Part shown: positions 2,086-53,157 of the stretch, piece after piece
Layout of the letters: every line of letters begins with the position of its first letter
Numbering within the stretch: position 1 is the first letter of the stretch
Origin: Macrostomum lignano
Taxonomy: Eukaryota
Assembly (NCBI GenBank): GCA_002269645.1
Contig: NIVC01002659.1
Span: 19,960 to 83,959 of the forward strand
Length of the DNA: 64,000 bases
Reading direction: 5' to 3'
Program-made: the position numbers and the translations under genes
The notes under the pieces: generated by a model
The model's input: only the letters and a program-made list of their open reading frames with translations
The model's database searches: none
What the model was told of the DNA's origin: nothing

Positions 2086-2175
2086 CTCAGTCAGTGCTTA
2101 AATCTATATCTTCTCTACTTCTAGCTCGTAATTTTATGTGTACTTTAACAACTTCAATTTTTTTCACAAAAACAG

Positions 2176-15332
<13,157 letters not shown>

Positions 15333-19161: not shown

Positions 19162-22100
19162 ATGAATACTTCTGTCGATGACGAACAAAAGCAGCATGTC
19201 AATCAGAAAGATAGAGAAGAGCAAAGTAGGATACGAAACACTCTGATGGCATTCGCTGGCAATACGTCTGCTCACGGAATTGGCAAGCTCATCTCACCGC
19301 TCTGGTATGTCCAAGCTCTGTGGCTGGTGCTCATTATCGGCGCTGTGAGCGGCCTCGCCTACCACATGAGCACCATGGTGAGTAAGTACATGGAAGAGCC
19401 GGTGTCCACCTCGGTCACTCTTCGCGGCGTCGACTTTGTCTATCCCGGAGTCACCGTGTGCAACAAGAAGTTCCTCTCCGTCAGCGCCATGGCTGAAAAG
19501 GTCAACAGCAACTCGAGTTCGGGGCCACCATTCAGCGTTGCCAATCAGGTTTGGCAGTGGAAAGACAGTGCAGCAAAGTTTTTCATGAATCTCGAGAGAT
19601 TGTCAAGTCTTACAGAAAATTTTGGCCTATCGTATCTTAATAATATAAGCGGAGGTATTTCGCTCACCTCATCAACGTACCTAATGCAGTACGAAGACAA
19701 CAAAGACAACCTGGGCCCGCTGCTGTTTCGCGACAGTGAAGGCATCGGGAGTTTCGCCCAGTACAGTCTGCACCCTGAGAAGCTGCTCATCCGCTGTCGG
19801 TTCGGTCCCTACGCCTGCGACATCTCCGACTTTTCCGTTGTACAAATGCACGACAATCCGTACTGCATCACACTCAATCTTACAAGCATTCAGAAAAAAA
19901 ACAATATATTGAAAAATGAAATCAACTCTTACCAACTGCAACTGTACTACTACACAGACTCAAGTCACTTCTTTGAAAATAACTTGATTCCGCAAATGAA
20001 AACTGCATCAGATTTCTTATTCCGCATGGACAGCAACGGCGGGGCTGATCTGTACATCCACCAGCCTGGTGCGTATCCTGGAACTGGAAAAAAGATTGAA
20101 ATTCCCAATGGCAACCAGGCTGCGGTCAGCGTCAACTACCAAGAATTCGAATTTGTCAACATCGCCAAGCGAGAGTGTCTCTCTTCTTATCCAGCGGACT
20201 TCATAAACTACTGGCAGCGAACAGTGCTGGGCAAGTTAATCAATTTTTTTAACTCGTTAAAAGTTAAAAAGTTAATTTAATTGCTCCAAAAAAATTAACT
20301 GTAACTAGTTAATTATTTAACTTTTGCCCAAAATTTAACTTCTGAAAAGTTAAAAGTTAAAGTTAATAATTCCCTAACGGAAAAAGTGACATTTTCCCGG
20401 ACATGTGTTCGGCGTGTTTTTTTTAATTTCAGGTCGGCGCGGCGCGGCTGTGGCCAGGTCGCGGCGCCCTGGGGAGCTTGTCGGGGAATACTCCCCTGGG
20501 AATTAGACCGGGGACCCCGGGGAGAAAAAAAGCATTTTTAACTAAATTTTTGCCATTTAAATAAGAAAATTATTCACAGAAAGCTGATTGAAACTCTGTC
20601 TATGCTTTTTTACCGCAAAACTGCTTATTTCAATGTATTATTTCAAACACAACACACGTTTGAATGGGGGGGGGTTCATAAGACCGAAATTCACAACGCC
20701 GAAACACCATACTTCACAAGACCGAAACTTCATAAGACCAAAATTTCACATCGTAGAAAACTTTACAATAAGGATTGTATTGCATGCAGAATTTTTGGCG
20801 TTGTGAAATTTCGGTCTTATGAAATTAGCGACCCGTTTGAATGTTTTTTTCACTATGAGTCTTTCAATCAAGCAAATTGAACGTACGAGCGTAGAAACCC
20901 ATCAGGAAAAAGAAGCCTTACTGACTATTGTGTTGGTCTGCGTTGACGGCTTGACACATTTGACGCAGGCACAGCGCCATATCCTGCGTCAGTCACTGAC
21001 GCATAGGGGGGTATCATACAATAACAAAATACTCCGTATTAGACAGGACAAAATGGTGATTTATTTGTATCTGCAAGAAGTTAAAATTTCGATTATAAAA
21101 ACAGTCTCATTCATTAATTATCCTCCCACGAGTGCAGCTGCTGAGTATGCATTTTCCGCCTCCGGAGTCTGGACCCTTTCTGATAAAGGTGCGCGCACGA
21201 TTTGGTGATGCCACGTTGTCAAATACAGTTTTAAACAAACATTGCCTTAAGTTTTTACCCTTGCGCCTTGAACATGTAGTCCATCCAAAGCTTTAATCAA
21301 AGTTTAAAAAATGCCACTTAGTGACTTATAAAGATCTAAGTTATCCGCCGTTTTTTACTTATTTTTTTCCCCGGGGTCCCCGGGGAATGACAGTAAATTC
21401 CCCGGGTCCCCGATAAGAAAATTCCCCGGGGAATCGACATCCCTATGTACAACGATAACTTCTAGTAGTGCTTGGGTAGAATATCAATAGATAATAGTTG
21501 AAGATTCCAGAATCTTCCGGAATATTCAATACATTATAACTTGTAACTGAAATATATACATGTAATAGTAGTTTGTGACGCGTTAAATAATGCTTAGAAA
21601 GGCGAAGTTATTTTATGTATGTATTAATTTTACTTTTTAATGGCATACAAGCTATTGAAACCCGCGGATTTTGAACCCGGGGAACTCCATTTCCCGGAAT
21701 TATTAACTTTTGTCATTTAACTTTAACTTCAGAAAAAAATTAACGATTTTTGTTAACTAGTTAATACATAAAAAATTTAACGAAAATTTAACGATTTTTT
21801 TAAAAATTTAACTAGTTAATTAACTAGTTAAACAATTAACTAGTTAACGCCCAGCACTGGCAGCGAACAGCCTCTGGGTCGGACCAAAGTGTTGCATATT
21901 CCTACACGAACACAGACTGCTTCTTCAATGAGCTGCAGAACTTGATCTACAAGCAGTGCGGCTGTCTGTCTGACGACTATCCAGTGCCTAACAGTTTAAA
22001 GGCCGGTGGAGTACCCTTATGTCTCAATATAACCCAGGCATACATTACACTGAATGAAAACTCCACACAGACTCTAAATGTGTCCTCTGGTGTTAGCTTT

Positions 22101-22685
22101 CTCTATCAGATGGTTACGGCTGCTGCCAGCGGAAGTATCAGCATGGATATCCAGAGGACCCTCTACTACATCATAAGCCAGTTTACCTGTCTTCGCGTCG
22201 CTGTTACAGCTTATCAAGTCAAAGCCGCCGCCCTGTGCACAGAGCGATGTCATACATCTCAGTATTCGACTCAGACAAGCCTCTACACCTGGCCAAGCAT
22301 GAACCCCAGCCTGCTAGCTGAAGATCTGCAGAAGTGGCTCGAGTCGAACGTCTACTACCGAAATAATGAGATCGTTCTTAACCAGACGTTTATACGTGAG
22401 GTTAATCGCGGAATCTACGACATCCTCACGCAGATAATCAATCGAGGTGCGAGTATCGGCACAAAAAACTTTCTCTCGATCAAGCTGGGCGCAGCCGACC
22501 AGTCGGGCAAGAGCACCGTCACTGAGGAGTCGCTTTCGTACGGGGCCTTCGATCTGCTCAGCGACATCGGCGGAATTCTCGGACTCTACCTTGGCGTCTC
22601 GGTGCTGACGTTGTGCGAGGTGCTGGAGCTGGCGCTGGGCCTGATTTTCTTCGAAGGTTCGAGAGTCAGGGGCCGGCGTCGCGTT

Positions 22686-22726
<41 letters not shown>

Positions 22727-22802
22727 AATGAAGCAATCACAGTCTGCCATAATAGTGGTGCAGGGAATAGAATCAAGTAAGGATGAAAACACTTTCAAAT
22801 GA
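19162..22802 (+). CDS. DEG/ENaC (amiloride-sensitive/ASIC-like) channel subunit, copy 1, interrupted by a transposon at 20222-21859
   Basis: Joining 19162-20221 to 21868-22802 gives a 664-aa ORF with the N-terminal HG motif (FAGNTSAHG), TM1, post-TM1 YPGVTVCN, Cys-rich thumb (CFFNELQNLIYKQCGC) and TM2 (LLSDIGGILGLYLGVSVLTLCE). No other introns are seen. Confidence 0.9.
20470..21445. mobile_element. Degenerate second TIR element with CCCCGGGG-rich ends nested in the hAT
   Basis: The right end ...CCCCGGGGAATCGACATCCCTA (about 21423-21444) looks like an hAT terminus. Inverted CCGGGGACCCCGGGGA(G)AAAAAAA motifs lie near 20508-20531 and 21361-21385. The left terminus is degenerate. Confidence 0.5.
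20666..20834. mobile_element. MITE nested inside the hAT element
   Basis: Inverted repeat TTCATAAGACCGAAAT(T)TCACAACGCC at 20675-20700 and 20797-20823, flanked by the direct repeat (C)GTTTGAAT at 20657-20665 and 20834-20842 (8-9 bp TSD). Confidence 0.7.
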
Positions 22803-25081: not shown

Positions 25082-26663
25082 ATGCAAGTTGCGGACAGCG
25101 AAGAGGCAGGTCATGAATTGCAGGATAAGGCGGATAAAAAGCGTGTCCGAAACACTCTGATAGCATTCGCTGGCAATATATCTGCTCACGGAATTTGGCA
25201 AGCTCATCTCGCCGCTCTGGTATGTCCAAGCTTTGTGGCTGGTGCTCATTATCGGCGCTGTGAGCGGCCTCGCCTACCACATGAGCACCATGGTGAGTAA
25301 GTACATGAAAGAGCCGGTGTCCACCTCAGTCACTCTTCGCGGCGTCGACTTTGTCTATCCCGGAGTCACCGTGTGCAACAAGAAGTTCCTATCTGTCAGC
25401 GCCATGGCTCAGAAGGTTGACAGGATCACCAGTGGACCAATCAGACCGGCCGGTGCGAATGAAGGCGAGCAAACTTGGTCGTGGTCAACAAACTCCATGA
25501 AATTCTTCTTGGTGGACCAGACGGGAAGAGACAACTTAGAAAAACAAAGTTCCGAAGAGTTGCTAACATCGTCAACGTACCTCATGCGAAACGAAGAATT
25601 GAGAAATAATCTAGCTCCGTTGATGTTTCGCGACAGCGACGGCATCGGGAGTTTCGCCCAGTACAGTCTGCACCCTGAGAAGCTGCTCATCCGCTGTCGG
25701 TTCGGTCCTTACGCCTGCGACATCTCCGACTCTCCGACAAATGCACGACAATCCGTACTGCATCACACTCAATCTCCGTACAGCGTCCAGGATAAGAACG
25801 ATTTATCCAAGGGAGAAGTGAATTTATTTGGTCTCGAACTCTACTACTGCACGGATTCGAGCCAATTAAATTCTTTGCGCTTACTTCCCGAATTGAAATT
25901 TGCATCCGACGCCTTCTTCCGCATGAGCAGCAACGGCGGAGTGTCTCTCTTCTTATCCAGCGGACTTCATAAACTACTGGCAGCGAACAGCCTCTGGGTC
26001 GGACCAAAGTGTTGCATATTCCTACACGAACACAGACTGCTTCTTCAATGAGTTGCAAAACTTGATCTACAAGCAGTGCGGCTGTCTGTCTGACGACTAT
26101 CCAGTGCCTAACAGTTTAAAAAAGCATGGCGCTACTTCGTGCTTGAACATTACAGAAGCTTATATTTTGAGTAACAAGAACAAAACTGAAACACCAAATG
26201 CATCATCAACTGAAAATTTTATAGAGCAGTGAGTTGCGTCTGTAAAACCGCAAACGGCTACCACCGAAATAATGAGATTGTTCTCAACCAGACATTTATA
26301 CGCGAGGTTAATCGCGGAATCTACGATATCCTCACGCAGATAATCAATCGAGGTGCGAGTATCGGCACAAAAAACTTTCTCTCGATCAAGCTGGGCGCAG
26401 CCGACCAGTCGGGCAAGAGCACCGTCACTGAGGAGTCGCTTTCGTACGGGGCCTTCGATCTGCTCAGCGACATCGGCGGAATTCTCGGACTCTACCTTGG
26501 CGTCTCGGTGCTGACGCTGTGCGAGGTGCTAGAGCTGGCACTGGGCCTGATCTTCTTCTTCGTAGCTTCGATAGTCAGGGGCCGACGTCGCGTTCAGCAG
26601 CAGCAGCAGCGGCAACAACAACAACCTGGCATCATCGTTGTGAAACCAGCATCGCAACAGTAA
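25082..26663 (+). pseudogene. DEG/ENaC copy 2, probable pseudogene
   Basis: Paralog of copy 1 from ATG 25082 to TAA 26661-26663. It has a +1 T near 25195 (GGAATTTGGC vs GGAATTGGC), a frame-disrupting indel near 25731, a deletion of about 130 bp near 25940 and one of about 215 bp near 26230-26260 relative to copy 1. Single-base lesions could be consensus errors, but the large deletions argue for real decay. Confidence 0.8.
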
Positions 26664-32363: not shown

Positions 32364-35300
32364 TCAAAGCATCGACTTGGATTTCTCGATGCGAACGCTG
32401 CGGCTCAGGCAGAGCCAGAAGGTTGAGGCGATGAGAAAGGAGACTGCCGCAGCCCAGGACGGGATCAGCGACCAGCCCGCGCTCACGGTCCGGTAGGCTG
32501 AGCTGCAGTACTGCGGGTGGGCATGGCGCTCAGTCTGTCACCTAGTCTGTCACTCTGTGTCACCTAGTCCATCACTCTGTGTCACCTAGTCCATCACTCT
32601 GTGTCACCTACTCTGTCACTCTGTGTCACCTAGTCCGTCACTCTGTGTCACCTAGTCTGTCACTCTGTGTCACCTAGTCTGTCACTCTGTGTCATCTAGT
32701 CTGTCACTCTGTGTCACCTAGTCCATCACTCTGTGTCACCTAGTCCGTCACTCTGTGTCACCTAGTCTGTCACTCTGTGTCACCTAGTCTGTCACTCTGT
32801 GTCACCTAGTCCGTCACTCTGTGTCACCTAGTCTGTCACTCTGTGTCACCTAGTCTGTCACTCTGTGTCACCTAGTCTGTCACTCTGTGTCATCTAGTCT
32901 GTCACTCTGTGTCACCTAGTCTGTCACTCTGTGTCACCTAGTCTGTCACTCTGTGTCACCTAGTCTGTCACTCTGTGTCACCTAGTCTGTCACTCTGTGT
33001 CATCTAGTCTGTCACTCTGTGTCACCTAGTCCATCACTCTGTGTCACCTAGTCCGTCACTCTGTGTCACCTAGTCTGTCACTCTGTGTCACCTAGTCTGT
33101 CACTCTGTGTCACCTAGTCCGTCACTCTGTGTCACCTAGTCTGTCACTCTGTGTCACCTAGTCTGTCACTCTGTGTCACCTAGTCTGTCACTCTGTGTCA
33201 TCTAGTCTGTCACTCTGTGTCACCTAGTCTGTCACTCTGTGTCACCTAGTCTGTCACTCTGTGTCACCTAATCCATCACTCTGTGTCACCTAGTCCATCA
33301 CTCTGTGTCACCTAGTCTGTCACTCTGTGTCACCTATTCCGTCACTCTGTGTCACCTAGTCTGTCACTCTGTGTCACCTAGTCTGTCACTCTGTGTCACC
33401 TAGTCTGTCACTCTGTGTCATCTAGTCTGTCACTCTGTGTCACCTAGTCTGTCACTCTGTGTCACCTAGTCTGTCACTCTGTGTCACCTAATCCATCACT
33501 CTGTGTCACCTAGTCCATCACTCTGTGTCACCTAGTCTGTCACTCTGTGTCACCTATTCCGTCACTCTGTGTCACCTAGTCTGTCACTCTGTGTCACCTA
33601 GTCTGTCACTCTGTGTCACCTAGTCTGTCACTCTGTGTCACCTAGTCTGTCACTCTGTGTCATCTAGTCTGTCACTCTGTGTCACCTTCTCTGTCACTCT
33701 AACTTCTCTCCATTGTCCTTTGCCGCCAGACTTTGTCCCAGCTCGTGACAGCATTTTTCCTTCCAATCAGCAATAAAACTGTTTACCTCTTCAGGCGTCT
33801 TCACCAAGGAGTAACAAGTGCAGTCTGTGCACGTGCGGGGCTTTCTGGACATTCGAGATATTTTTTCGTGCTCGATAGAGTTGCCGAACAGGGCGAAAAT
33901 TCCTTGGGTGAACAAAAGGGACAAGTCAGACATATGCGGATTAAGAGACTGTAAACTAGACTAGCCTCAGTTACGAGTACCCTAGAAGGATTACCTTACC
34001 ACTTGATTGCCTCAACCACCTCACCGCCCCAACCACCTCACTGCCCCAACCACCTCACTGCCCCAACCACCTCACTGCCCCAACCACCTCACTGCCCCAA
34101 CCACCTCATTGCTCTAACTACCCACTGCCCCAACCACATCATTGCTCTAACTACCCACTGCCCCAAACACCTCATTGCTCTAACTACCCACTGCCCCAAC
34201 CACCTCATTGCTCTAACTACCCACTGCCCCAATCGCCTCATTGCTCTTACTACCCACTGCCCCAACCACCTCATTGCTCTAACTACCCACTGCCCCAACC
34301 ACCTCACTGCCCCAACCACCTCACTGCCCCAACCACCTCACTGCCCCAACCACCTCACTGCCCCAACCACCTCATTGCTCTAACTACCCACTGCCCCAAC
34401 CACATCATTGCTCTAACTACCCACTGCCCCAAACACCTCATTGCTCTAACTACCCACTGCCCCAACCACCTCATTGCTCTAACTACCCACTGCCCCAATC
34501 GCCTCATTGCTCTTACTACCCACTGCCCCAACCACCTCATTGCTCTAACTACCCACTGCCCCAACCACCTCACTGCCCCAACCACCTCACTGCCCCAACC
34601 ACCTCATTGCTCTAACTACCCACTGCCCCAACCACCCCACTGCCCCAACCACCCACTTCTTCAACCCCTGCATAACCCTAACTACCCATAACACAAGGAC
34701 CACCACAAATCCACCGTTTCAAGAGATCCACACCTCGCTCAAATAATCTTATCCACTTAACTACCTACTAACAGTAGGCACAAAAAGGAAAATCACACCA
34801 GCGGTGAGGTAGAGAACCCCGGTGACGGTGATGGAGGGCACAACTCGAGCTGCCACTCCGATTAAACCAGTAATTAGCGAGGCGAGAATGCAGAGCATGA
34901 CAACAATGCAGCAGGATATGGTGTTGTTCTGCATCTCTGCGGGTAGTTCCAGTGATTATAAACGTTTGATGGGCCCTTCGTACTTTAATAACCAAGCCCT
35001 TAATTAACTTATAAGCAATTCTTATATATGGGACTAATGATCCCAAATGGATCTGAGTGGGACTTATGATCCCAAATGGGTCTGAATGGGACTTGATCCA
35101 GAATTGAATTGAGTGGGGACTTATAAGACCTCTAGTAATGTCTAAAATCCCTATTATCGAGAATCTGGTAGCAATTTAATTCTTTTTTTCATAACGCAAT
35201 TTCTTGCGTTACTCTACGAGCAACCTGCAAAGGCGCTTTCTTTTATTTCTCAGATGTAGAACTAAGCTTCAACTCACTAAGCCATGTACCTGTTCCGTGA

Positions 35301-36439: not shown

Positions 36440-36967
36440 CTCTTGCTCTGTCTCTCTATTTCTGCTCGCCAAGCCGTTTTCGGTTAGTGCCAGGCTTGTG
36501 CTTGAGCAGGGGGAGGAGAGGTTGCCGGGCAGAACCGTTTTGGATTATTTTGTCAGCGCTAGCAGGGGGATGAGGCTGCTTCAGGACTGGCTGGCAGAGG
36601 GCGGCCTGGCCTAAGCAGAAACTCTAATTGTGAGTGGTGGCAGGCCGGTTAGAAATTTGATAGACTGGACTGGGAGCTGTTGGAAGGATGCTGGTGAAGC
36701 GTTTGGTTGCTAACCAAATGCGTCTCACTTTTCTTTTCTTCTTTAGAGACTTCTCTTGAGGTTTCTGATTCACCTTCATTGTTAGCGAAGCCAGCAGTCT
36801 TTCACCCCAACTCAATTCCAGTTGCTTTTATCCAGTTCAGGAAGCTCAACTAGCTGCATCTGAACGGCATCAAAACCGCTTTACTGATCCCAGTAAAGTA
36901 CCTTACTCCACAGTTCACATTGCAGTCACTAGCAGAGCAGCCACTAGATCCCATCGGACTCCAACGC

Positions 36968-39900
36968 ACAGAGTGTAGGGTTTAGTGTCCAACCCTAAGA
37001 CACAGAGTGTAGGGTTTAGTGTCCAACCCTAAGACACAGAGTGTAGGGCTTAGTGTCCAACCCTAAGACTAAGAGTTTAGGGTTTAGTGTCCAGCCCTAA
37101 GACTAAGAGTGTAGGGTTTAGTGTCCAACCCTAAGACACAGAGTGTAGGTTTTAGTGTCCAACCCTAAGACTAAGAGTGTAGGGTTTAGTGTCTGACCCT
37201 AAGACTAAGAGTTTAGGGTTTAGTGTCCAACCCTAAGACTAAGAGTTTAGGGTTTAGTGTCCAGCCCTAAGACTAAGAGTGTAGGGTTTAGTGTCCAACC
37301 CTAAGACACAGAGTGTAGGTTTTAGTGTCCAACCCTAAGACTAAGAGTGTAGGGTTTAGTGTCTGACCCTAAGACTAAGAGTTTAGGGTTTAGTGTCCAA
37401 CCCTAAGACTAAGAGTGTAGGGTTTAGTGTCCAACCCTAAGACACAGTGTAGGGTTTAGTGTCCAACCCTAAGACACAGAGTGTAGGGTTTAGTGTCTGA
37501 CCCTAAGACTAACAGTGTAGGGTTTAGTGTCCAACCCTAAGACACAGAGTGTAGGGTTTAGTGTCCAACCCTAAGACTAAGAGTGTAGGGTTTAGTGTCC
37601 AACCCTAAGACACAGAGTGTAGGGTTTAGTGTCTGACCCTAAGACACAGAGTGTAGGGTTTAGTGTCTGACCCTAAGACACAGAGTTTAGGGTTTAGTGT
37701 CTGACCCTAAGACACAGAGTGTAGGGTTTAGTGTCCAACCCTAAGACTAAGAGTGTAGGGTTTAGTGTCCAACCCTAAGACACAGAGTGTAGGGTTTAGT
37801 GTCTGACCCTAAGACACAGAGTTTAGGGTTTAGTGTCTGACCCTAAGACACAGAGTGTAGGGTTTAGTGTCCAACCCTAAGACTAAGAGTGTAGGGTTTA
37901 GTGTCCAACCCTAAGACACAGAGTGTAGGGTTTAGTGTCTGACCCTAAGACACAGAGTTTAGGGTTTAGTGTCTGACCCTAAGACTAAGAGTGTAGGGTT
38001 TAGTTTCTGACCCTAAGACTAAGAGTGTAGGGTTTAGTGTCTGACCCTAAGACACAGAGTGTAGGGTTTAGTGTCCAACCCTAAGACTAAGAGTGTAGGG
38101 TTTAGTTTCTGACCCTAAGACTAAGAGTGTAGGGTTTAGTGTCCAACCCTAAGACACAGAGTGTAGGGTTTAGTGTCCAACCCTAAGACACAGAGTGTAG
38201 GGTTTAGTGTCCAACCCTAAGACTAAGAGTGTAGGGTTTAGTGTCCAACCCTAAGACACAGAGTGTAGGGTTTAGTGTCTGACCCTAAGACACAGTGTAG
38301 GGTTTAGTGTCTGACCCTAAGACTAAGAGTGTAGGGTTTAGTGTCCAACCCTAAGACACAGAGTGTAGGGTTTAGTGTCCAACCCTAAGACACAGAGTGT
38401 AGGGTTTAGTGTCTGACCCTAAGACTAAGAGTGTAGGGTTTAGTGTCCAACCCTAAGACTAAGAGTGTAGGGTTTAGTGTCCAACCCTAAGACTAAGAGT
38501 GTAGGGTTTAGTGTCCAACCCTAAGACACAGAGTGTAGGGTTTAGTGTCCAACCCTAAGACACAGAGTGTAGGGTTTAGTGTCCAACCCTAAGACACAGA
38601 GTGTAGGGTTTAGTGTCCAACCCTAAGACTAAGAGTGTAGGGTTTAGTGTCCAACCCTAAGACACAGTGTAGGGTTTAGTGTCCAACCCTAAGACACAGA
38701 GTGTAGGGTTTAGTGTCTGACCCTAAGACTAACAGTGTAGGGTTTAGTGTCCAACCCTAAGACACAGAGTGTAGGGTTTAGTGTCCAACCCTAAGACTAA
38801 GAGTGTAGGGTTTAGTGTCCAACCCTAAGACACAGAGTGTAGGGTTTAGTGTCTGACCCTAAGACACAGAGTGTAGGGTTTAGTGTCTGACCCTAAGACA
38901 CAGAGTTTAGGGTTTAGTGTCTGACCCTAAGACACAGAGTGTAGGGTTTAGTGTCCAACCCTAAGACTAAGAGTGTAGGGTTTAGTGTCCAACCCTAAGA
39001 CACAGAGTGTAGGGTTTAGTGTCTGACCCTAAGACACAGAGTTTAGGGTTTAGTGTCTGACCCTAAGACACAGAGTGTAGGGTTTAGTGTCCAACCCTAA
39101 GACTAAGAGTGTAGGGTTTAGTGTCCAACCCTAAGACACAGAGTGTAGGGTTTAGTGTCTGACCCTAAGACACAGAGTTTAGGGTTTAGTGTCTGACCCT
39201 AAGACTAAGAGTGTAGGGTTTAGTTTCTGACCCTAAGACTAAGAGTGTAGGGTTTAGTGTCTGACCCTAAGACACAGAGTGTAGGGTTTAGTGTCCAACC
39301 CTAAGACTAAGAGTGTAGGGTTTAGTTTCTGACCCTAAGACTAAGAGTGTAGGGTTTAGTGTCCAACCCTAAGACACAGAGTGTAGGGTTTAGTGTCCAA
39401 CCCTAAGACACAGAGTGTAGGGTTTAGTGTCCAACCCTAAGACTAAGAGTGTAGGGTTTAGTGTCCAACCCTAAGACACAGAGTGTAGGGTTTAGTGTCT
39501 GACCCTAAGACACAGTGTAGGGTTTAGTGTCTGACCCTAAGACACAGAGTGTAGGGTTTAGTGTCCAACCCTAAGACACAGAGTGTAGGGTTTAGTGTCC
39601 AACCCTAAGACACAGAGTGTAGGGTTTAGTGTCTGACCCTAAGACTAAGAGTGTAGGGTTTAGTGTCCAACCCTAAGACTAAGAGTGTAGGGTTTAGTGT
39701 CCAACCCTAAGACTAAGAGTGTAGGGTTTAGTGTCCAACCCTAAGACTAAGAGTGTAGGGTTTAGTGTCCAACCCTAAGACACAGAGTGTAGGGTTTAGT
39801 GTCCAACCCTAAGACACAGAGTGTAGGGTTTAGTGTCCAACCCTAAGACACAGAGTGTAGGGTTTAGTGTCTGACCCTAAGACACAGTGTAGGGTTTAGT

Positions 39901-40362
39901 GTCTGACCCTAAGACTAAGAGTGTAGGGTTTAGTGTCCAACCCTAAGACACAGAGTGTAGGGTTTAGTGTCCAACCCTAAGACACAGAGTGTAGGGTTTA
40001 GTGTCTGACCCTAAGACTAAGAGTGTAGGGTTTAGTGTCCAACCCTAAGACTAAGAGTGTAGGGTTTAGTGTCCAACCCTAAGACACAGAGTGTAGAGTT
40101 TAGTGTCCAACCCTAAGACACAGAGTGTAGGGTTTAGTTTCTGACCCTAAGACACAGAGTGTAGGGTTTAGTGTCTGACCCTAAGACACAGAGTGTAGGG
40201 TTTAGTGTCTGACCCTAAGACACAGAGTGTAGGGTTTAGTGTCCAACCCTAAGACACAGAGTGTAGGGTTTAGTGTCTGACCCTAAGACACAGAGTGTAG
40301 GGTTTAGTGTCCAACCCTAAGACTAAGAGTGTAGGGTTTAGTGTCCAACCCTAAGACTAAGA
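36968..40362. repeat. 34-bp satellite with inverted telomere-like motifs, about 100 units
   Basis: Unit GTGTAGGGTTTAGTGTCCAACCCTAAGACACAGA with CCAA/CTGA and CACA/CTAA variants. Confidence 0.98.
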
Positions 40363-41019: not shown

Positions 41020-42215
41020 GTGTCTCTTTAGGTTTGACATGATGCTTCTTTTATGTTTGACATGATGCTTCTTTTATGATTAACAGAATGCTATTTTTAT
41101 GTTTGACATGATGCTTTTTAGGTTTGACATGATGCTTCTTTTATGTTTGACATGATGCTTTTTAGGTTTGACATGATGCTTCTTTTATGTTTGACATGAT
41201 GCTTCTTTTATGTTTGACATGATGCTTCTTTTATATTTGACATGATGTTTCTTTTATGATTGACAGAATGCTATTTTTATGTTTGACATGATGCTTTTTA
41301 GGTTTGACATGATGCTTCTTTTATGTTTGACAGAATGCTTTTTTTATGTTTGACATGATGCTTATTTTATGTTTGACATGATGCTTATTTTATGTTTGAC
41401 ATGATGCTTTGTTTATGTTTGACATGATGCTTTGTTCATGTTTGACAGAATGCTTCTTTTATGCTTGACATGACGCTGATTTTATGTTTGACATGATGGT
41501 TATTTTATGTTTGACATGATGGTTATTTTATGTTTGACATGATGGTTATTTTATGTTTGACATGATGGTTATTTTATGTTTGACATGATGGTTATTTTAT
41601 GTTTGACATGATGGGTATTTTATGTTTGACATGATGCTTCTTTTATATTTGACATGATGCTTCTTTTATGTTTGACATGACGCTGATTTTATGTTTGACA
41701 TGATGGTTATTTTATGTTTGACATGACGCTGATTTTATGTTTGACATGATGGTTATTTTATGTTTGACATGATGGTTATTTTATGTTTGACATGATGGTT
41801 ATTTTATGTTTGACATGATGGTTATTTTATGTTTGACATGATGGTTATTTTATGTTTGACATGATGGTTATTTTATGTTTGACATGATGGGTATTTTATG
41901 TTTGACATGACGCTGATTTTATGTTTGACATGATGGTTATTTTATGTTTGACATGATGGGTATTTTATGTTTGACATGACGCTGATTTTATGTTTGACAT
42001 GATGGTTATTTTATGTTTGACATGATGGTTATTTTATGTTTGACATGATGGTTATTTTATGTTTGACATGATGGGTATTTTATGTTTGACATGACGCTGA
42101 TTTTATGTTTGACATGATGGTTATTTTATGTTTGACATGATGGTTATTTTATGTTTGACATGATGCTTCTTTGATGTTTGACATGTTGCTTCTTTTATGT
42201 TTGACATGATGCTTT
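41020..42215. repeat. 22-bp AT-rich minisatellite (TTTTATGTTTGACATGATGGTTA / ...GCTTC)
   Basis: About 54 units, shifting from GCTTC to GGTTA variants along the array. Confidence 0.97.
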
Positions 42216-42522
42216 GTTTATGTTTTACATGCCGCGGCTTTTATGTTTCTATATCTGGCTGCACACTGGCTCCATATCAGTGTCAGTATTCGGCATTTGG
42301 CGACAAGTTCCCATCGCTTAATCCAGCAGAAAATTTAAATAAAGCTAGGATCGGGATTATCTACCAACATATTAATCATAAATGTTTGAATTGCTCTACT
42401 TTCAGTAGGCCGCGTGAGCATTTTTTCCTTAAAAGTACAATATTTAGAAAATTGAAAGCAGATAATTGGGAATGAGAGGTCATGAAAAATGTTATGGTTA
42501 ATTAAAAACTACAAACTAGACA

Positions 42523-43269: not shown

Positions 43270-46200
43270 CGTTGGGTCTGGGTCCTGCTCAAGCGGCACC
43301 CGGATCTCGACGCCAGTGGTCTTGTGTACCACAGCACGGTCCGCAAGGGCACGACCGGGGCCACAGTCATCCTCGGCCTGACGGGGGGATGGGCCAAGCG
43401 GCTACCGCACGGCACAAACCTCCACCTTGGTCTCCATCAACTGACCATCCTCCGCTGTGAGGAGGGCAGGGTGGAGACCAAGAAAGACGGGAAGCGCGCC
43501 GCTCCCGGAGCTGGGGCTCATGCCCCGCCGGCCAAGCGGCAGCAGCAACCCGATCCCGAGCCTAACAAGACTATTTCGCGCTGCTGAGTCCGCCTCGCGC
43601 GGACGTAGACCGCCCGCAGTAACCGGCGGTCCGGTCTAATCCAGCGCGCACTTGACGAAGCTCAGTCTCTGAGACTTCACCTCGAGCAGACTCGTGTCGC
43701 TCGCAAAGACACTGAAAGCCAGCCGAGGGAACTGGACGACGGCACGGCTCAGCCTTCCAACTGGTGGGATTACCACCAGGAGGACGCTGCCGGCCGAGCT
43801 CAGACTCCCGACGGCGGGGCGCAAGGCGAAGGCAGCAGCCGTACCCCAGTCGCTGGGGAGGAGGGCGGTGTAGCGCGGCTAGGTGACTCACCTGCCGTGG
43901 GCCCGTGTCCGCCTCCGCGCGGCTGGGGAGGCGGCTGAGCCTGAGCCAATGGAAATTGGCGACTCAACTCTCACCGATGAGGCTGAGAATGAGTTGCTTT
44001 TCTCCTCCCCTGGACAGTAGACATGACTGTCTCCCAGGGCATCCATTGCTTGCAGGTCAACCTGCAGCACAGCATTGCTGCTTCAGTCAACCTCTTGAAG
44101 CACACTGACCAATACGCGCCAGGGATTATCCTTATCAGGAACCTTGGACGCTTAGGGGCAGGCCCAACATGTCCCCACCGGCTACCAGTGTTTAACCGCT
44201 GGTACCCGGGAGGGAAACCTGGCACCAAGATCCTGCATCATGCTCAAGCGGCACCCGATCTCGACGCCAGTGGTCTTGTGTACCACAGCACGGTCCGCAA
44301 AGGGCACGACCGGGGCCACAGTCATCCTCGCCTGACGGAGGGATGGGCCAAGCGGCTACCGCACGGCACAAACCTCCACCTTGGTCTCCATCAACTGACC
44401 ATCCTCCGCTGTGAGGAGGGCAGGGTGGAGACCAAGAAAGACGGGAAGCGCGCCGCTCCCGGAGCTGGGGCTCATGCCCCGCCGAGTCCGCTCGGCGAGT
44501 ACCCGCCCTAACAACCGGCTATTCGCGGTCGGTGCTGAGTCCAGCCTCGCGCCCGCTTGACGAGACTTCTCGAGCTCACTCTGACGAGACTCTGAGCTGC
44601 ACGACCAGCCAGCCGGGGAGGACGACGGCGGCTCAGCGGGTGGGACCACCAGGCCGCTGCCCGCTGGGGAGGAGGGCGGTGTAGCGGGGCTAGGTGACTC
44701 ACCTGCCGTGGGCGCCGTGTCCGCCTCCGCGGCGGCTGGGGAGGCGGCTGAGCCTGAGCCAATGGAAATTGGCGACTCAACTCTCACCGATGAGGCTGAG
44801 AATGAGTTGCTTTTCTCCTCCCCTGGACAGTAGACATGACTGTCTCCCAGGGCATCCATTGCTTGCAGGTCAACCTGCAGCACAGCATTGCTGCTTCAGT
44901 CAACCTCTTGAAGCACACTGACCAATACGCGCCAGGGATTATCCTTATCCAGGAACCTTGGACGCTTAGGGGCAGGCCCCAACATGTCCCCACCGGCTAC
45001 CAGTGTTTAACCGCTGGTACCCGGGAGGGAAACCTGGCACCAAGATCCTGCATCATGGTGTCCAGTTCTATTAACGCATGGCTCAGATCAGACCTGTCCA
45101 CCAGGGACATCTGTGTCATCCAGTCTGAAGACATACTCCCTGGGAGGACTACCCTCATCGCCTCGGTTTACCTACCGGGCGACGGCGAGATGATCCCAGT
45201 AGAGCTTGTCACACTGGTCGAGCTCTGCTCCACCAGAAACTATGAGCTGCTCGTGGCAGGTGACATCAATGCCCACCACACCCACTGGGGCAGTTCTGAT
45301 ATAAACCAGAGAGGTGAAGACTTCCTGGCTTATATTGCTACTACAACCCTTGAGTTCTGTAACTCGGGTAGTACCCCTACCTTCAATAACGGACGCCGAT
45401 CGGAGGTGCTGGATGCCACCCTCGCCACGCCCAGGCTCTTCCGGAGCACTAGGGAGTGGTGGGTGCTTCCTGAGGCGTCCCTCTCCGATCACAAGTTCAT
45501 CTCTTTCACGCTGGCCAGCGCCCGTAACGCAGGCCAGCTTTACTGGAAACGAAATGCTAGGAATACTGACTGGACCGCCTTCAGGCTTGCCCTGGAGGAG
45601 ACCTATCGTTGCACTAGCACTCCAGTCTCCATCAACACCTGCGAAGAAGCAGACGAATTTGCGGCCGCACTTACGGACTCGCTCACTGCTGCCTTCGAAG
45701 CCTCATGCCCACTAAAGGCATACAAAGGCAAACAGTCGGCCCCATGGTGGAACCCGCAGCTTGGCGACCTCCGTCGCAGAGCCAAAAGGCTTCACCGCAG
45801 GGCCCAAAAAACTAAAAACCCGGCCGACCAAACCGCCTACCTGAACTCTATCCACGAGTTCAAGAGGCAGGTTAGGAACGCCAAAACCAACAAGTGGCGC
45901 GAATACTGTGAGGAACTTGAGGGCTACCGCCCCACCTCCAGAATCGTTAAAGCCCTCACCCTGGACAAAATGTCCAAACTCTCCTCAGTCAAGAGAGCCG
46001 ACGGCTCGCTCACTGAGAACCCAGGAGAAACACTGGAAGCGATGCTAACAGCGTTTTTCCCGAACGAGCCAGCCAGGCCGGACCCCCCTGATCACTCAGT
46101 GGGCGGACACGTACTGGCTGACTCAATCATCACGGAGGACCGCGTTACTAAAGCTGTCTCCTCCTTCAAACCCTTCAAATCCCCAGGACCGGACGGCGTT

Positions 46201-48700
46201 GTGCCAGCCTTCCTGCGGGAGGCGGTGAAATGCACCGGTTTCCTGCGGAACCTTTGCCGGCTTCTGAAAGCTTGCATTGTTCTCGGCTTTGTTCCGAAAC
46301 CCTGGACCGAGGCCAAGGTGGTCTTTATCCCCAAGCCTGGCCGACCGGACTACCGGTCCATTAAATCCTTCAGACCAATTAGCCTCACCTCCTCATTGGT
46401 GAAGCTGTTAGAGAGACTGGTGCTCTGGCGCCTCCTCTCTGTGGAACTGAAGAACAAGCCGCTCAGTGAGAACCAGCACGCCTTTCGGGCAGGCAGGTCC
46501 ACGGAGAGCGCGCTTCACGTTCTGGTTGACATGCTGGAGAAAGCCGTTCTTGGTAATGGCTACGCTCTCGCTGTCTTCCTCGACATTGTTGGAGCCTTTG
46601 ATAATGTCCTCTTTGAGGCTTTTGACAGAGCTCTACGTGCTAGAGGAACCCACTCGCACCTCACCCGGTGGATCATGTATATGATCAGCCACCGTACTGC
46701 CACCGCACATCTGTTGGGCCACCAACGGACGGTAACCGTCTGCAAAGGCAGCCCCCAGGGCGGTGTCCTCTCTCCAGTTCTCTGGAACATGGTCATCGAT
46801 GAGCTCCTCCAGGACAGCCATCTTGACCCCATCCTCAAGGTCGGTTACGCCGATGATGTCACAGCCGTGGCATCCGGACCGTCACCTGAAACCCTTAGAG
46901 ATCTTTTGCAAAACTTCATTCGCTCTGCTGAACGTTGGGCGGACAGGTGCGGCCTCAGGCTCTCCGAGACCAAAACTGTCGCGATCATGTTCACCAGCAG
47001 GGTAAACTGGCGTATTCGCCCACTAAAGCTTTACGGGGTGGAAATCCCATCCTGCAAGCAAACCAAGTGTCTCGGCGTTACGCTGGACCACCGGCTGAGC
47101 TGGTCCACCCACGTCCAGGCCAAAACCAAAAAAGCCCTCGCGATTCTTGCGCAGCTGCGCAGAGCCGTCGGCACCACCTGGGGCCTCACCCCAAAGCGGC
47201 TCTGGTGGATCTATACCGCAATGGTCCGACCGGCCGTTACTTACGCCGGCCTGGTCTGGACAAGCGCCTTGCAGATTAAAACCTGCCACGAAGCCCTCAA
47301 AAAGGTGCAGGGACGTGCGTGCCGCATGATCCTGAATGCCCCGCTCTCTGCTCCCTTTGACGGCCTCAACGCCTTTCTTTGCCTCCCGCCTCTGGACATC
47401 TTTGTCCGTCGCGAGGCTGCTAAAACCACCCGCCGGCTCATCGAGGCTGGCGCTAGCTTCAAGCCACAAAGAGCGATGGCGAAGCGCAAGCTCCTGCCGC
47501 ACTCTGACCTGTGCCTTAAAGTTCTGGAGGAGAGTGGGAGTGCGGCTGTCCTTTCGGACGCTGAGCCGCGCTCCCTCAATCTCTACCAACGCTTCAAGGT
47601 CACTATCCCCTCCAGGGAGAACGCCAACGACAGCTGGGCCCCTCAGGAGGTTCACTGCTTCACTGACGGATCCTCCAAAGACGGTTTATCCGGCTTTGGA
47701 GTCTGTATCCTTATCAACGGCCGCGTGATTGCTACTCACGCCCAACACACTGGCAGACTCTCCAGCGTCTTCCAGAATGAAGTCCTTGCCATCAGCTCCT
47801 GTGCAGCTGAGCTCCACTGCAAGGACTTCAAGGACAGAAGAATCTTCTTCCACTCTGACAGCCAGGCCGCTTTACAGGCCCTGTGTCACACCACTACGAA
47901 CTCCCGAACAGTCCGCGACTGTATCGGGCAGCTCAACAAGCTGGCTCGGAGGAACACCGTCCGGCTCACGTGGATCCCAGGACACGCCGGCTTCAAAGGT
48001 AACGAGCTCGCCGACTCCCTCGCTAAGGCGGGCTGTTCCGGCTCGCCCCTTGGCCCCGTGCCCCTGGCCCCCATCCCCGCCACAGTCATTAATCGTCAGA
48101 TTAACGACTGGGCGGACATCCTGCACTTGCGCAGATGGGATGGCATCTCCAACTGCCGCCAATCTCGTGCGGCAGTGCCCAATCCGTCCCTCAAGCTGCG
48201 GAGAATCCTTTTGAATCAAAATCGAAAAGATATCCGCGCTCTCACTATGACCTTCACAGGTCACGGTTGCTTTGCCAGGCACTGCTTCCTCCGATGTGTT
48301 CGCCGGAGTGAACTCTGCCCTTTCTGCAACCTCGAGAACGAAGACGCCAAGCACTTCGTCTGCTACTGCCCGGCCTTCAACCGAGACCGGCTCAACCACC
48401 TCGGGCCCAACCCGTCCCTGGACGACGTTTGCCGGCCCGAGAACATCCCACGGCTCATCCGGTTCCTCCGGGCCACCAAGCGAGCCTCCGTCTTCCCCAC
48501 CGAAGACAACGCTGCAGACAGGACCGGCAGACCTCCCTGACCGGCCCCGCGCCCTAGCCTTTGCGGGTCTTTCAGGGATTAGCGGAATGGGCGACGCTCG
48601 CCTCCCCGCTGCGTCTTCGGACCGCCCTGCAGCTAAGTCAAGTGGGTCTGAAGCTTTCACACCGCCGCAGCTTCACCGATGCCATACCTTTGCATATCCT
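43270..48700 (+). mobile_element. Non-LTR retrotransposon with RNase H (I group, probably LOA/Lian-like); ORF1 truncated and duplicated
   Basis: ORF1 remnant ends EPMEIGDSTLTDEAENELLFSSPGQ* (TAG 44831-44833), 2 nt before ORF2; a 3' UTR follows 48540. The clade call rests on domain architecture and FKPFKSPGPDG. Termini and TSD were not identified. Confidence 0.9.
44836..48540 (+). CDS. LINE ORF2: APE endonuclease, reverse transcriptase, RNase H, CCHC finger; 1234 aa, uninterrupted
   Basis: Endonuclease: IQEPW, AGDINAHH, SDH. RT: FRPISL, QHAFR, FLDIVGAFD, GSPQGGVLSP, YADD, CLGV. RNase H: FTDGS, NEVLAI, HSDSQ, WIPGHAGFKGNELADSLAK. Finger: CPFC...HFVCYC. Confidence 0.96.
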   Translation: MTVSQGIHCLQVNLQHSIAASVNLLKHTDQYAPGIILIQEPWTLRGRPQHVPTGYQCLTAGTREGNLAPRSCIMVSSSINAWLRSDLSTRDICVIQSEDILPGRTTLIASVYLPGDGEMIPVELVTLVELCSTRNYELLVAGDINAHHTHWGSSDINQRGEDFLAYIATTTLEFCNSGSTPTFNNGRRSEVLDATLATPRLFRSTREWWVLPEASLSDHKFISFTLASARNAGQLYWKRNARNTDWTAFRLALEETYRCTSTPVSINTCEEADEFAAALTDSLTAAFEASCPLKAYKGKQSAPWWNPQLGDLRRRAKRLHRRAQKTKNPADQTAYLNSIHEFKRQVRNAKTNKWREYCEELEGYRPTSRIVKALTLDKMSKLSSVKRADGSLTENPGETLEAMLTAFFPNEPARPDPPDHSVGGHVLADSIITEDRVTKAVSSFKPFKSPGPDGVVPAFLREAVKCTGFLRNLCRLLKACIVLGFVPKPWTEAKVVFIPKPGRPDYRSIKSFRPISLTSSLVKLLERLVLWRLLSVELKNKPLSENQHAFRAGRSTESALHVLVDMLEKAVLGNGYALAVFLDIVGAFDNVLFEAFDRALRARGTHSHLTRWIMYMISHRTATAHLLGHQRTVTVCKGSPQGGVLSPVLWNMVIDELLQDSHLDPILKVGYADDVTAVASGPSPETLRDLLQNFIRSAERWADRCGLRLSETKTVAIMFTSRVNWRIRPLKLYGVEIPSCKQTKCLGVTLDHRLSWSTHVQAKTKKALAILAQLRRAVGTTWGLTPKRLWWIYTAMVRPAVTYAGLVWTSALQIKTCHEALKKVQGRACRMILNAPLSAPFDGLNAFLCLPPLDIFVRREAAKTTRRLIEAGASFKPQRAMAKRKLLPHSDLCLKVLEESGSAAVLSDAEPRSLNLYQRFKVTIPSRENANDSWAPQEVHCFTDGSSKDGLSGFGVCILINGRVIATHAQHTGRLSSVFQNEVLAISSCAAELHCKDFKDRRIFFHSDSQAALQALCHTTTNSRTVRDCIGQLNKLARRNTVRLTWIPGHAGFKGNELADSLAKAGCSGSPLGPVPLAPIPATVINRQINDWADILHLRRWDGISNCRQSRAAVPNPSLKLRRILLNQNRKDIRALTMTFTGHGCFARHCFLRCVRRSELCPFCNLENEDAKHFVCYCPAFNRDRLNHLGPNPSLDDVCRPENIPRLIRFLRATKRASVFPTEDNAADRTGRPP

Positions 48701-51675: not shown

Positions 51676-52219
51676 ATCTCTGCTCCCGTGTCTAAATTGT
51701 GTTTTGCTAAACAAAACTCCTGAGCTCTGAACCAACTGTCGTCAATTTAACCCTAGTTGTGCCCAGGCCCGCCCTGATCCAGCATGAGCATCTGCAACTG
51801 CTGGTAAGCAAACTAAAGCGTTTCGTACTGAAAGCAAATAGGTAGATAAAGCTGGATAAGGTCTCTTTCCTTACCTCGCCTCTGCCTATCTCTCTTTCTC
51901 TGCCCCGGATTTTTCGATGCGTTTCTCTTTCTTAGAAATGCTACATGTCTGACTTTAGGCCGCTGGCTGTGTGTGACTGCGCGCGCGTGTCTGTGTGTAT
52001 TTTTGCAGTCAGGCCCCGCCCGCCCCTCCGTGTTCACACGCGCCCTTGTGGCCCCCTCCCAGCTGCCATCTTTGCAGCAAACGCGATTTGAAACTCGTGA
52101 TAAGGAAAGCTAATCCTTATCCGCTGCGCAACACTCCTTTCGCTATTCTATCTAGCCAAGGAGGCCCAGAGGCAGAAGCCCGGAGTAGAAAATCATACCA
52201 CCTTAAGCCTACATTTTTA

Positions 52220-53157
52220 TACAACTTTAGGCTGGACTGAAGTTCGTCCAGTTAGGGGGTTCATGTCTCCGACACTTCATATCTCCGACACTTCACATCT
52301 CCGACACTTCACATCTCCGACACTTCATATCTCCGACACTTTATATCTCCGACACTTCATATCTCCGACACTTTATATCTCCGATACTTCATATCTCCGA
52401 CACTTTATATCTCCGATACTTCATATCTCCGACACTTCATATCTCCGACACTTCATATCTCCGACACTTCACATCTCCGACACTTCATATCTCCGACACT
52501 TTATATCTCCGATACTTCATATCTCCGACACTTCACATCTCCGACACTTCATATCTCCGACAGTTCATATCTCCGACACTTCATATCTCCGACACTTCAT
52601 ATCTCCGACACTTCATATCTCCGACACTTCACATCTCCGACACTTCATATCTCCGACACTTCGATCTCCGACACTTCGATCTCCGACACTTCGATCTCCG
52701 ACACTTCATATCTCCGACACTTCATATCTCCGACACTTCATATCTCCGACACTTCATATCTCCGACACTTCATATCTCCGACACTTCATATCTCCGACAC
52801 TTCATATCTCCGACACTTCATATCTCCGACACTTCGATCTCCGACACTTCATATCTCCGACACTTCGATCTCCGACACTTCATATCTCCGACACTTCATA
52901 TCTCTGACACTTCAGATTTCCGACACTTCAGATTTCCGACACTTCATATCTCCGACACCTCAGATCTCCGACACTTCATATCTCTAACAATTTATAGGGT
53001 TAGGATGAACTGATTTGTCGGAGATATCATAGAATACGCAAAATCTGGCCCTGAAATAAGACCGAGTTCACATGGTTTGCTAGTTTGGTTCAGGCAACCG
53101 CAAAATTGCCGATATTTTGTGTTTATTTTGAAGAACTACAGTCGGCCTAAAATTGTA
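52220..53157. mobile_element. Degenerate TIR element enclosing a 16-bp minisatellite
   Basis: TACAACTTTAGGCTGGACTGAAGTTCGTC (52220-52248) vs the reverse complement of 53130-53157 (TACAATTTTAGGCCGACTGTAGTTCTTC). TSD not evident. Confidence 0.5.
52263..52985. repeat. 16-bp minisatellite (ATCTCCGACACTTCAT)
   Basis: Tandem units with 15-bp variants. Confidence 0.97.

Follow-up and report, generated by a model that had tools for sequence, protein, structure and literature searches.

Whether a DNA transposon that lies in the coding exon of a channel gene breaks that gene or can be removed from its transcript as an intron is the question raised by this locus. In the window, by which we mean the whole 64,000-nt stretch of DNA that was analysed, an element interrupts a gene of the DEG/ENaC family, and an earlier note had proposed that this element is introner-like, with splice sites at its own ends through which it could be spliced out in frame. 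Our analysis points with good confidence to an ordinary, recent gene-breaking insertion, in which a non-autonomous hAT-like transposon would have moved by cut-and-paste into the only coding exon of a DEG/ENaC channel gene that is specific to its lineage, duplicating 8 bp of target DNA. The host gene and the element are laid out as follows.

19162-20221, plus strand: 5' part of the DEG/ENaC coding exon, reaching from codon 1 through codon 353 to one base of codon 354, its last 8 bases being copy 1 of the target-site duplication
20214-20221, no strand assigned: target-site duplication copy 1, GCAGCGAA, read directly
20222-21859, no strand assigned: hAT-like transposon, non-autonomous, 1638 bp, with 11-bp inverted ends, subterminal repeat arms and non-coding filler
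20222-20232, no strand assigned: left terminal inverted repeat, CAGTGCTGGGC, holding the proposed donor GT (20224-20225)
20233-20381, no strand assigned: left subterminal arm, AT-rich, with repeated TTAAC/GTTAA and TAACNNGTTA motifs
21700-21848, no strand assigned: right subterminal arm, with TAACTAGTTA repeats, the source of the TTAAC branch-point-like motifs and of competing TAG acceptors
21849-21859, no strand assigned: right terminal inverted repeat, GCCCAGCACTG, holding the proposed acceptor AG (21853-21854)
21860-21867, no strand assigned: target-site duplication copy 2, GCAGCGAA, holding the second proposed acceptor AG (21862-21863)
21868-22802, plus strand: 3' part of the DEG/ENaC coding exon, with the thumb-domain cysteines, TM2 with the GVS filter motif and a poly-Q tail

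Without the element and one duplication copy, the host reading frame runs from an ATG at 19162 to a stop codon at 22800-22802 and encodes 664 aa. This product matched the Pfam ASC family (PF00858) with an E-value of 8.9e-51 over positions 1-455 of the 455-position profile, and in an alignment of 24 sequences every invariant and near-invariant column was kept in the inserted gene copy. The features by which DEG/ENaC membership is judged, namely a full-length ASC match, two transmembrane segments, the HG motif, the ectodomain cysteines and the TM2 G-x-S, were all found. The gene further resembles known members (Pfam ASC and the FaNaC, ASIC and ENaC structures) in the sequence YPGVTVCN after TM1, in the conservation of the ectodomain cysteines and in a TM2 with GGILGLYLGVSVLT, which aligns to the FaNaC and ASIC structures, and it differs from them in being very divergent, in its poly-Q C-terminal tail and in its single coding exon. 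Searches with a word pre-filter, run with and without the poly-Q tail, had missed its relatives; an exhaustive search of representative sequences found 1064 of them among 1.84 billion representatives, the best being a Macrostomum lignano protein with 32% identity. The host gene was probably under purifying selection until recently.

The terminal inverted repeats of the element are complementary at 11 of 11 positions and the 8-bp target duplication is perfect on both flanks. TTAAC/GTTAA motifs reach a density of 75 per kb in the left terminal 160 nt (20222-20381) and 100 per kb in the right terminal 160 nt (21700-21859), against 1.4 per kb in the whole window. Copies of TAACNNGTTA were found at 20250 and 20302 in the left arm and at 21754, 21809, 21821 and 21837 in the right arm; of the seven copies that the window holds, six are no more than 110 nt from an end of the element, while 0.55 would be expected in the whole window. 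In Ac, subterminal repeats are transposase-binding sites. On the plus strand, each frame of the element holds 32-43 stop codons, which leaves it without coding capacity, and a 129-aa ORF inside it had neither a Pfam match nor homologs. The 8-bp duplication, the short inverted ends (about 10-25 bp) starting with C/TAG and the repeated short subterminal motifs in the outer 200 bp or so of each end, by which hAT elements are recognized, are all present. Since it combines an 8-bp duplication, 11-bp ends starting with CAG, clustered subterminal TAACNNGTTA and non-coding filler, the element matches a non-autonomous hAT transposon by architecture, and together with the Pfam ASC match this agrees with the earlier reading of the locus as a hAT-type insertion in a DEG/ENaC exon. 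The internal ORF (20819-21208, with a continuation in the +1 frame) had resembled the hAT C-terminal motif PTSAAAEYAFSASG by eye and was discarded as support for hAT membership; it had no Pfam match even at an E-value of 10, and against the PDB it gave only non-significant matches to GAPDH (E 1.3). Scanning the window for Rfam families and tRNAs gave no hits.

The empty site was found in a second gene copy, 5.7 kb downstream of the inserted gene.

25091-26623, plus strand: uninserted paralog (pseudogene), with the empty site at 25980-25987

Here AACTACTGGCAGCGAACAGCCTCTGGG (25972-25998) contains a single GCAGCGAA (25980-25987), which shows that the repeat flanking the element arose by target-site duplication and not by chance. 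The paralog is a mosaic of blocks with 94-99% and 50-77% identity, and it has decayed through in-frame stops, frameshifts and two large deletions. The earlier note had described a 1638-bp element with an 8-bp duplication in an otherwise intact 664-codon frame, beside a decayed paralog with the empty site; all of its coordinates hold in the sequence and both statements on the paralog were borne out. The block around the empty site is 182 bp long and 98.9% identical to the inserted copy (2 of 182 nt differ), so that few mutations would be expected since the insertion and the intact halves of the inserted gene are unsurprising. The open halves, which had been offered as a hint of function with the concession that a recent insertion explains them equally well, are thus expected for a young insertion and do not discriminate between the readings.

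The consequences for the transcript were then considered at the following positions.

20278-20280, plus strand: first in-frame stop on read-through, TAA, giving a truncated 372-aa product
20069-20074, plus strand: cryptic competing donor in the exon, CTG^GTGCGT (^ marks the splice boundary), 8.3 bits, the same hexamer as in the real donor at 10631
21713-21732, plus strand: highest-scoring acceptor-like site of the locus, within the element, TCATTTAACTTTAACTTCAG^AAA, 11.9 bits, with the first exon base at 21733

The transcript would either be read through, ending at 20278-20280 with a fragment that comprises TM1 and part of the ectodomain, or undergo aberrant splicing at cryptic sites of higher score; the insertion most likely inactivates this copy of the host gene. 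In the proposed alternative, the GT at 20224, which is in phase 0, would be spliced to one of two AGs; joined to the AG at 21853-21854 it gives a stop-free product of 669 aa (15 nt longer, adding HWQRT), and joined to the AG at 21862-21863 a stop-free product of 666 aa (6 nt longer, adding RT), exactly as had been worked out before. The element thus has a boundary GT/AG pair that changes the mRNA by a multiple of three, as an introner should (zero or a multiple of three). The TTAAC branch-point-like motifs reported upstream of the acceptors were also recovered, as five YTNAY motifs (four TTAAC and one TTAAT) within 62 nt. The insertion site falls in a loop between two family-invariant cysteines, and because this loop varies from 15 to 40 aa across 24 homologs, two or five additional residues would plausibly be tolerated. 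The end sequence of the element, CA^GTGCTGGGC ... GCCCAG^CACTG, carries both the GT and the AG; the footprint derived from it comprises 2 + 5 nt of the element and 8 nt of duplication, 15 nt in all, and a splice borne by the ends would therefore keep the frame wherever the element inserts and whichever way round it lies. The in-frame property of the proposed splice is not beyond chance, because 50 in-frame, stop-free GT..AG pairs exist between donors at 20000-20300 and acceptors at 21600-22000.

We scored the sites with local splice matrices, built from 10 donors of a neighbouring gene and 8 acceptors, of which the acceptor matrix was unstable under leave-one-out. The proposed donor, ACA^GTGCTG, scored -2.2 bits, compared with 6.4-10.0 bits for the ten real donors; it agrees with CAG^GTAAGT at 2 of 9 positions, which are the GT only, and ranks below the median of all the window's GT dinucleotides, at their 35th percentile. 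All ten real donors have G at +5. The proposed acceptors scored -0.6 bits (21853-21854) and 3.6 bits (21862-21863), compared with 4.3-13.9 bits for real acceptors. Stronger sites were found nearby: besides the exon donor at 20069, a second cryptic exon donor at 19378 (ATG^GTGAGT) scored 8.6 bits, and besides the acceptor at 21733, a second strong acceptor inside the element, with its first exon base at 20433, scored 9.7 bits. The stretch from the TTAAC motifs to the proposed CAG also holds two TAG acceptors that are out of frame, at 21828 and 21844. Pairing of the two element ends in RNA, over the full length of their arms, was predicted at -83.8 kcal/mol, against -29.2 ± 5.0 kcal/mol for shuffled sequences, and both proposed splice sites fall inside the predicted 11-bp terminal stem. 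The introner expectation that boundary sites equal those of host introns in quality was not borne out, and of the claims on splicing the weakness of the donor, already noted before, was confirmed, and neither credible splice sites at the ends nor an introner-like nature of the element found support.

No second copy of the element was found within the 64-kb window; one match to the end sequence, at position 376, belongs to a 28-bp minisatellite and was attributed to chance. When metagenome contigs were scanned with the end pattern, at least 119 loci were returned, nearly all of them chance matches of 16-17 nt, and the only true relatives were L031 (2528-3888) and L046 (1991-2430); two others, L098 and L055, were dismissed as chance matches. 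Both relatives have the same ends as the window element and 8-bp duplications, GCTGTACT in L031 (8 of 8 positions) and TTAATGGT/TTAATGAT in L046 (7 of 8), and L046 contains five copies of TAACNNGTTA. One of the two lies within a larger intron of a CwfJ-domain gene and the other in non-coding DNA; neither is a whole intron. Introners form multi-copy families whose members make up introns in many unrelated genes. Neither the element ORFs nor the relatives in metagenome contigs yielded an autonomous partner or a transposase, which in hAT elements has a BED finger, a DDE core and a hAT dimerisation domain at the C-terminus; one ORF of L031 matched zf-BED only below threshold (E 0.3; 11.6 bits, the cut-off being 20.6). 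A literature search on Macrostomum hAT elements returned nothing relevant. The hAT target consensus is weak, nTnnnnAn; among the three target sites, which are too few for statistics, GCAGCGAA has the A at position 7 and no T at position 2, that of L031 has neither base and that of L046 has only the T.

Taken together, we consider it very unlikely that the GT at 20224 is spliced to either AG to give a working channel with a nascent intron. The correct frame arithmetic, the 15-nt footprint that would suit any insertion of such an element, the variable loop, the YTNAY motifs and the retention of all invariant and near-invariant residues speak for such splicing, as do an element size of 1.6 kb within the intron range of the source genome (69-2862 nt) and precedents in Aureococcus introners (PMC9860276) and maize Ds (Giroux 1994, as cited in PMC3443670). 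Against it stand a donor worse than a typical random GT, acceptors whose scores fall short of real ones or reach only their lower edge, stronger competitors in both exon and element, the enclosure of both sites in the predicted stem, a length of 1638 bp that well exceeds the medians given for known introner families (30-654 nt; PMC9860276), and the copy evidence given above. The donor GT of the left end and the acceptor AGs of the right end and of the duplication are better read as probable by-products of CAGTGCTGGGC and of the target sequence than as evolved signals. The stronger version, that a hAT-type introner family is active in a bilaterian animal, probably a flatworm, and is seen here in the act of giving an intron to a channel gene that had none, is extremely unlikely. 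If in-frame removal were true, the locus would be a rare animal example, and a datable one, of a hAT element giving rise to an intron, and the family would be one whose end sequence guarantees an in-frame footprint. The phenomenon of a transposon as an intron is already known.

Aberrant splicing through the stronger cryptic sites is a possible, if doubtful, alternative fate of the transcript. The latent donor at 20069 or 19378 would be joined to the element acceptor at 20433 or 21733, part of the element would become exonic and the product would be frameshifted or truncated, with the same loss of function as in the gene-breaking insertion that we prefer. The donors (8.3-8.6 bits) and acceptors (9.7 and 11.9 bits) are within the range of real sites and the activation of latent sites by transposon insertion has precedent (PMC3443670), but the scores come from matrices built on few sites, the latent donors are idle in the uninterrupted gene, and that a downstream acceptor would activate them is conjecture. 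It is unlikely, to a somewhat greater degree, that the insertion is polymorphic, restricted to a haplotype or peculiar to the assembly, with an intact copy elsewhere in the organism, in which case the window would be uninformative on the function of the gene in the species. The insertion looks young, with perfect inverted ends and duplication, its flanks are intact with all conserved residues, and the closest homologs are from Macrostomum lignano, whose group has recently duplicated genomes; the window itself holds no evidence that bears on this reading, and the sole other copy there is a pseudogene. Read as a gene-breaking insertion, the locus is a textbook example, and a clean one, of a young DNA transposon with the empty site adjacent, in a fast-evolving tandem DEG/ENaC pair; it is not surprising, and its use lies in the annotation of the transposon family and in flagging the inserted gene copy as probably broken.

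Among known systems, Aureococcus introners leave 4 nt plus the 8-bp duplication, 12 nt in total, in the mRNA (PMC9860276, Fig. 2F; Gozashti et al. 2022). The window element resembles them in carrying both splice sites, in its 8-bp duplication and in a footprint that is a multiple of three (7 + 8 = 15 nt), and differs in that they are short, multi-copy and spliced in many genes while it is a single 1638-bp copy in the window with a non-consensus donor. The maize hAT element Ds made an intron de novo (Giroux 1994, as cited there in PMC3443670); as in the Ds cases described there, a hAT element sits in an exon with terminal or nearby sequences usable for near-precise splicing, but splicing was demonstrated for Ds, and the terminal donor of the window element is very weak. 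Ac/Ds elements have an 8-bp duplication, 11-bp ends starting with C/TAG and short repeats in the terminal ~200 bp, and their non-autonomous members, of ~1 kb or larger, contain unrelated filler DNA (PMC3260210). In duplication, ends, repeats and filler, the window element is like the Ds-l4 and Ds2 types of maize; it differs from Ac/Ds in its animal host, probably a flatworm, in its ends (CAGTGCTGGGC against C/TAGGGATGAAA) and in its subterminal motif (TAACNNGTTA against AAACGG).

The interrupted DEG/ENaC gene (copy 1, 19162-22802) and its uninserted paralog contained the following features.

20222-21859: element, 1638 bp, perfect 11-bp inverted ends
20214-21 and 21860-67: direct duplication GCAGCGAA, 8 bp, perfect
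~25091-26623: paralogous DEG/ENaC pseudogene, disrupted by in-frame stops, frameshifts and two deletions (~130 and ~270 bp)

The left junction (20200-20240) reads ...AACTACTG GCAGCGAA followed by the element start CAGTGCTGGGCAAGTTAA..., and the right junction (21840-21880) reads ...TTAACGCCCAGCACTG followed by GCAGCGAA CAGCCTCTGG.... The paralog carries AACTACTGGCAGCGAACAGCCTCTGGG at 25972-25998 with a single GCAGCGAA, surrounded by a 182-bp block of 98.9% identity to copy 1. This is a true empty site, and the 8-bp duplication was therefore made by the insertion. Ends, duplication, ORF and empty site were all as the earlier note had described them.

When the element and one copy of the duplication were removed, 19162-20221 joined 21868-22802 in a single 664-codon ORF that matched the Pfam ASC profile (amiloride-sensitive sodium channel, PF00858) over positions 1-455 of 455 (E 8.9e-51), with TM1 and TM2 regions alignable to FaNaC, ASIC and ENaC structures. 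All invariant and near-invariant columns of a 24-homolog alignment were retained in copy 1. Among 1.84 billion representative proteins, the nearest relatives were three Macrostomum lignano proteins with 28–32% identity, so that the probable source of the window is a free-living flatworm or some other lineage without close representatives among these proteins. Exact look-ups of predicted products gave no match to a transcript. The C-terminal end has a 13-glutamine tract coded by CAG/CAA (22688-22729), the paralog version of which is partly diverged.

Between 25091-26623 and 19162-22802, sharp-edged blocks of 94–99% nucleotide identity alternate with blocks of ~50–77%, a mosaic that suggests patchy gene conversion in an older paralog pair instead of the simple decay of a recently duplicated copy. 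Where identity is high, the differences are mainly synonymous (23 versus 11 non-synonymous), which shows purifying selection on the channel in the recent past; this fits a gene working until the insertion and is silent on the time afterwards. We rejected the argument that both halves being still open speaks for function: only 2 of 182 positions in the block at the insertion site differ from the paralog, and if the insertion does not predate the exchange with the paralog, a rough estimate gives ~10 substitutions over the 2-kb ORF, of which less than one would create a stop.

The element has no coding capacity (32–43 stops per + strand frame), and its one 129-aa ORF had neither a Pfam match nor homologs. 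Its duplication, ends, subterminal repeats and filler match the architecture of Ac/Ds non-autonomous hAT elements, which have an 8-bp duplication, 11-bp inverted ends from C/TAG, short repeats in the terminal ~200 bp and filler DNA (PMC3260210). Of the seven copies of the palindrome TAACNNGTTA in the window (0.55 expected window-wide), six are at most 110 nt from the element ends, and TTAAC/GTTAA reaches 75–100 per kb over the outermost 160 nt of the element versus 1.4 per kb window-wide. The filler includes a 150-bp foldback (20675-20826) with 17-nt perfect arms (TTCATAAGACCGAAATT) and, 832 bp apart, GC-rich inverted repeats containing CCCCGGGG (20508-20529 and 21362-21383); both could be nested miniature elements or pieces of the element's long inverted arms.

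No second copy was present within the 64-kb window. Relatives were sought by a pattern scan of metagenome contigs, where most loci were chance matches and two were genuine.

2528-3888: element at locus L031, 1361 bp, with 17 terminal bases (CAGTGCTGGGCGTTAAC) in common with the element and an 8-bp duplication GCTGTACT
1991-2430: element at locus L046, a 440-bp miniature, end match 10/11 bases, duplication TTAATGGT/TTAATGAT

The L031 copy lies inside a larger intron separating two exons of a CwfJ_C_1-domain gene, and its ORF had a sub-threshold match to a BED finger (E 0.3). Its subterminal repeats are unlike those of the element, whereas TAACNNGTTA is common to the element and L046, which has five such motifs, none outside the miniature, and is located in non-coding DNA. 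Both loci, in the unrelated metagenome contigs LFIK01012275.1 and Ga0209364_1008503, have CAGTGCTGGG[C/G] ends with 8-bp duplications, an end type that seems widespread among uncharacterised eukaryotes. No transposase was found, and hAT membership is therefore assigned by architecture alone.

The earlier note had proposed that the element may be introner-like, with ends that could be spliced out in frame, and its arithmetic was correct. With the ORF starting at 19162, a codon begins at 20224, which puts the GT at 20224-25 in phase 0; junction 20223^21855 adds HWQRT (669 aa) and 20223^21864 adds RT (666 aa), both stop-free. If the GT and AG carried by the ends were used, 2 + 5 element bases and the 8-bp duplication would stay behind, and this 15-nt remainder, as a multiple of three, is in frame wherever the element inserts, in either orientation given the perfect inversion of the 11-bp ends. 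The scheme matches the design of Aureococcus introners, where 4 nt and an 8-bp duplication (12 nt) add four amino acids (PMC9860276, Fig. 2F). Family-invariant cysteines C339 and C371 flank the insertion; the loop between them has 15–40 residues across 24 homologs, and 2–5 additional residues there would plausibly be tolerated. There are 50 in-frame, stop-free GT..AG pairs when donors from 20000-20300 are combined with acceptors from 21600-22000, so that one at the element ends is unremarkable.

Splice sites were scored against ten donors and eight acceptors of an ELKS/CAST-like gene (2138-13287), placed by ORF continuity.

20224: proposed donor, ACA^GTGCTG, -2.2 bits, 35th percentile of the window's + strand GTs
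21855: proposed acceptor, ...GCCCAG^CAC, -0.6 bits, 68th percentile of all AG
21864: proposed acceptor, ...TGGCAG^CGA, 3.6 bits, 91st percentile of all AG
20069: competing exon donor, CTG^GTGCGT, 8.3 bits
19378: competing exon donor, ATG^GTGAGT, 8.6 bits
20433: competing element acceptor, 9.7 bits
21733: competing element acceptor, 11.9 bits, the best of the locus

Real donors scored 6.4–10.0 bits (2.5–8.5 under leave-one-out) and real acceptors 4.3–13.9 bits, the acceptor matrix being indicative because it has eight sites only and is unstable under leave-one-out. All ten real donors (GTTTGT, GTGAGA three times, GTGAGC, GTAAGT twice, GTGCGT, GTTAGT and GTAAGC) have G at +5, and the two without A at +4 both follow CAG. 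The proposed donor agrees with CAG^GTAAGT at 2/9 positions, the GT itself only, and the pyrimidine tract is 53% for both proposed acceptors (41–76% in real ones). The competing sites are much better than the proposed ones. The stretch from the TTAAC motifs to the proposed CAG also holds two TAG acceptors, 21828 and 21844, in a frame different from that of the donor. The donor-like ATG^GTGAGTAAGT at 19378-19387 (8.6 and 7.0 bits), just past TM1 in the uninterrupted DEG/ENaC ORF, is probably a silent latent site because the ORF and Pfam match pass straight through. Predicted RNA pairing between the element arms was -83.8 kcal/mol versus -29.2 ± 5.0 in shuffled controls; both proposed sites would fall within the 11-bp terminal stem, which, we infer, would hinder U1 and U2AF access. 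Introns of the neighbouring ELKS/CAST-like gene span 69–2862 nt, and a 1.6-kb intron would therefore be of ordinary size.

Removal of transposons as introns is long established, with the maize hAT element Ds as the classic case (Giroux 1994, as cited in PMC3443670), and transposons may carry splice sites near their boundaries or activate latent ones (PMC3443670). Introners occur in many eukaryotes and take splice sites from the element, duplication or exon (PMC9860276, PMC11282704). The geometry that this locus has in common with such cases, together with the variable loop, favours in-frame removal via the element's ends, but the boundary sites are below host-intron quality and face stronger competitors, and 1638 bp exceeds the reported median lengths of introner families (30–654 nt; PMC9860276). 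Introners are also multi-copy intron-forming families, whereas the element is single within the window. We therefore consider such removal very improbable; the best explanation, with good confidence, is that a non-autonomous hAT-like transposon recently inserted into a DEG/ENaC gene and disrupted it. Of the earlier interpretation, the hAT-type insertion and the frame arithmetic are supported, but introner-like ends are not.

The first gene of the window is the ELKS/CAST-like (active-zone) gene on the + strand, identified by Pfam Cast matches, a multi-exon gene with introns packed with minisatellites (e.g. 18-mer, 22-mer, 21-mer and 30-mer), including an array at 12165-12928 that resembles a long ORF. 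Minisatellite arrays with 11–34-bp units are unusually dense in the window (e.g. 1-436, 1249-2080, 32536-33700, 36967-40357, 41027-42231, 52260-52984 and 53584-54460), the largest being a 34-mer repeated 100 times at 36967-40357. An intact 1234-aa LINE ORF with endonuclease, reverse transcriptase and RNase H domains (44836-48540, +) is potentially an active retrotransposon. Directly beside it, in an island of 60–68% GC (40–50% in the rest of the animal window), lies an intronless 776-aa beta-xylosidase-like ORF (49405-51735, -) with Pfam GH3 N and C domains, which in PDB and NCBIfam matches xylan 1,4-beta-xylosidases best and is a candidate for horizontal acquisition. At the right edge, an ankyrin-repeat ORF (62873-63526, +; Pfam Ank_2/Ank, E 1e-23) is followed by a 21-mer minisatellite.
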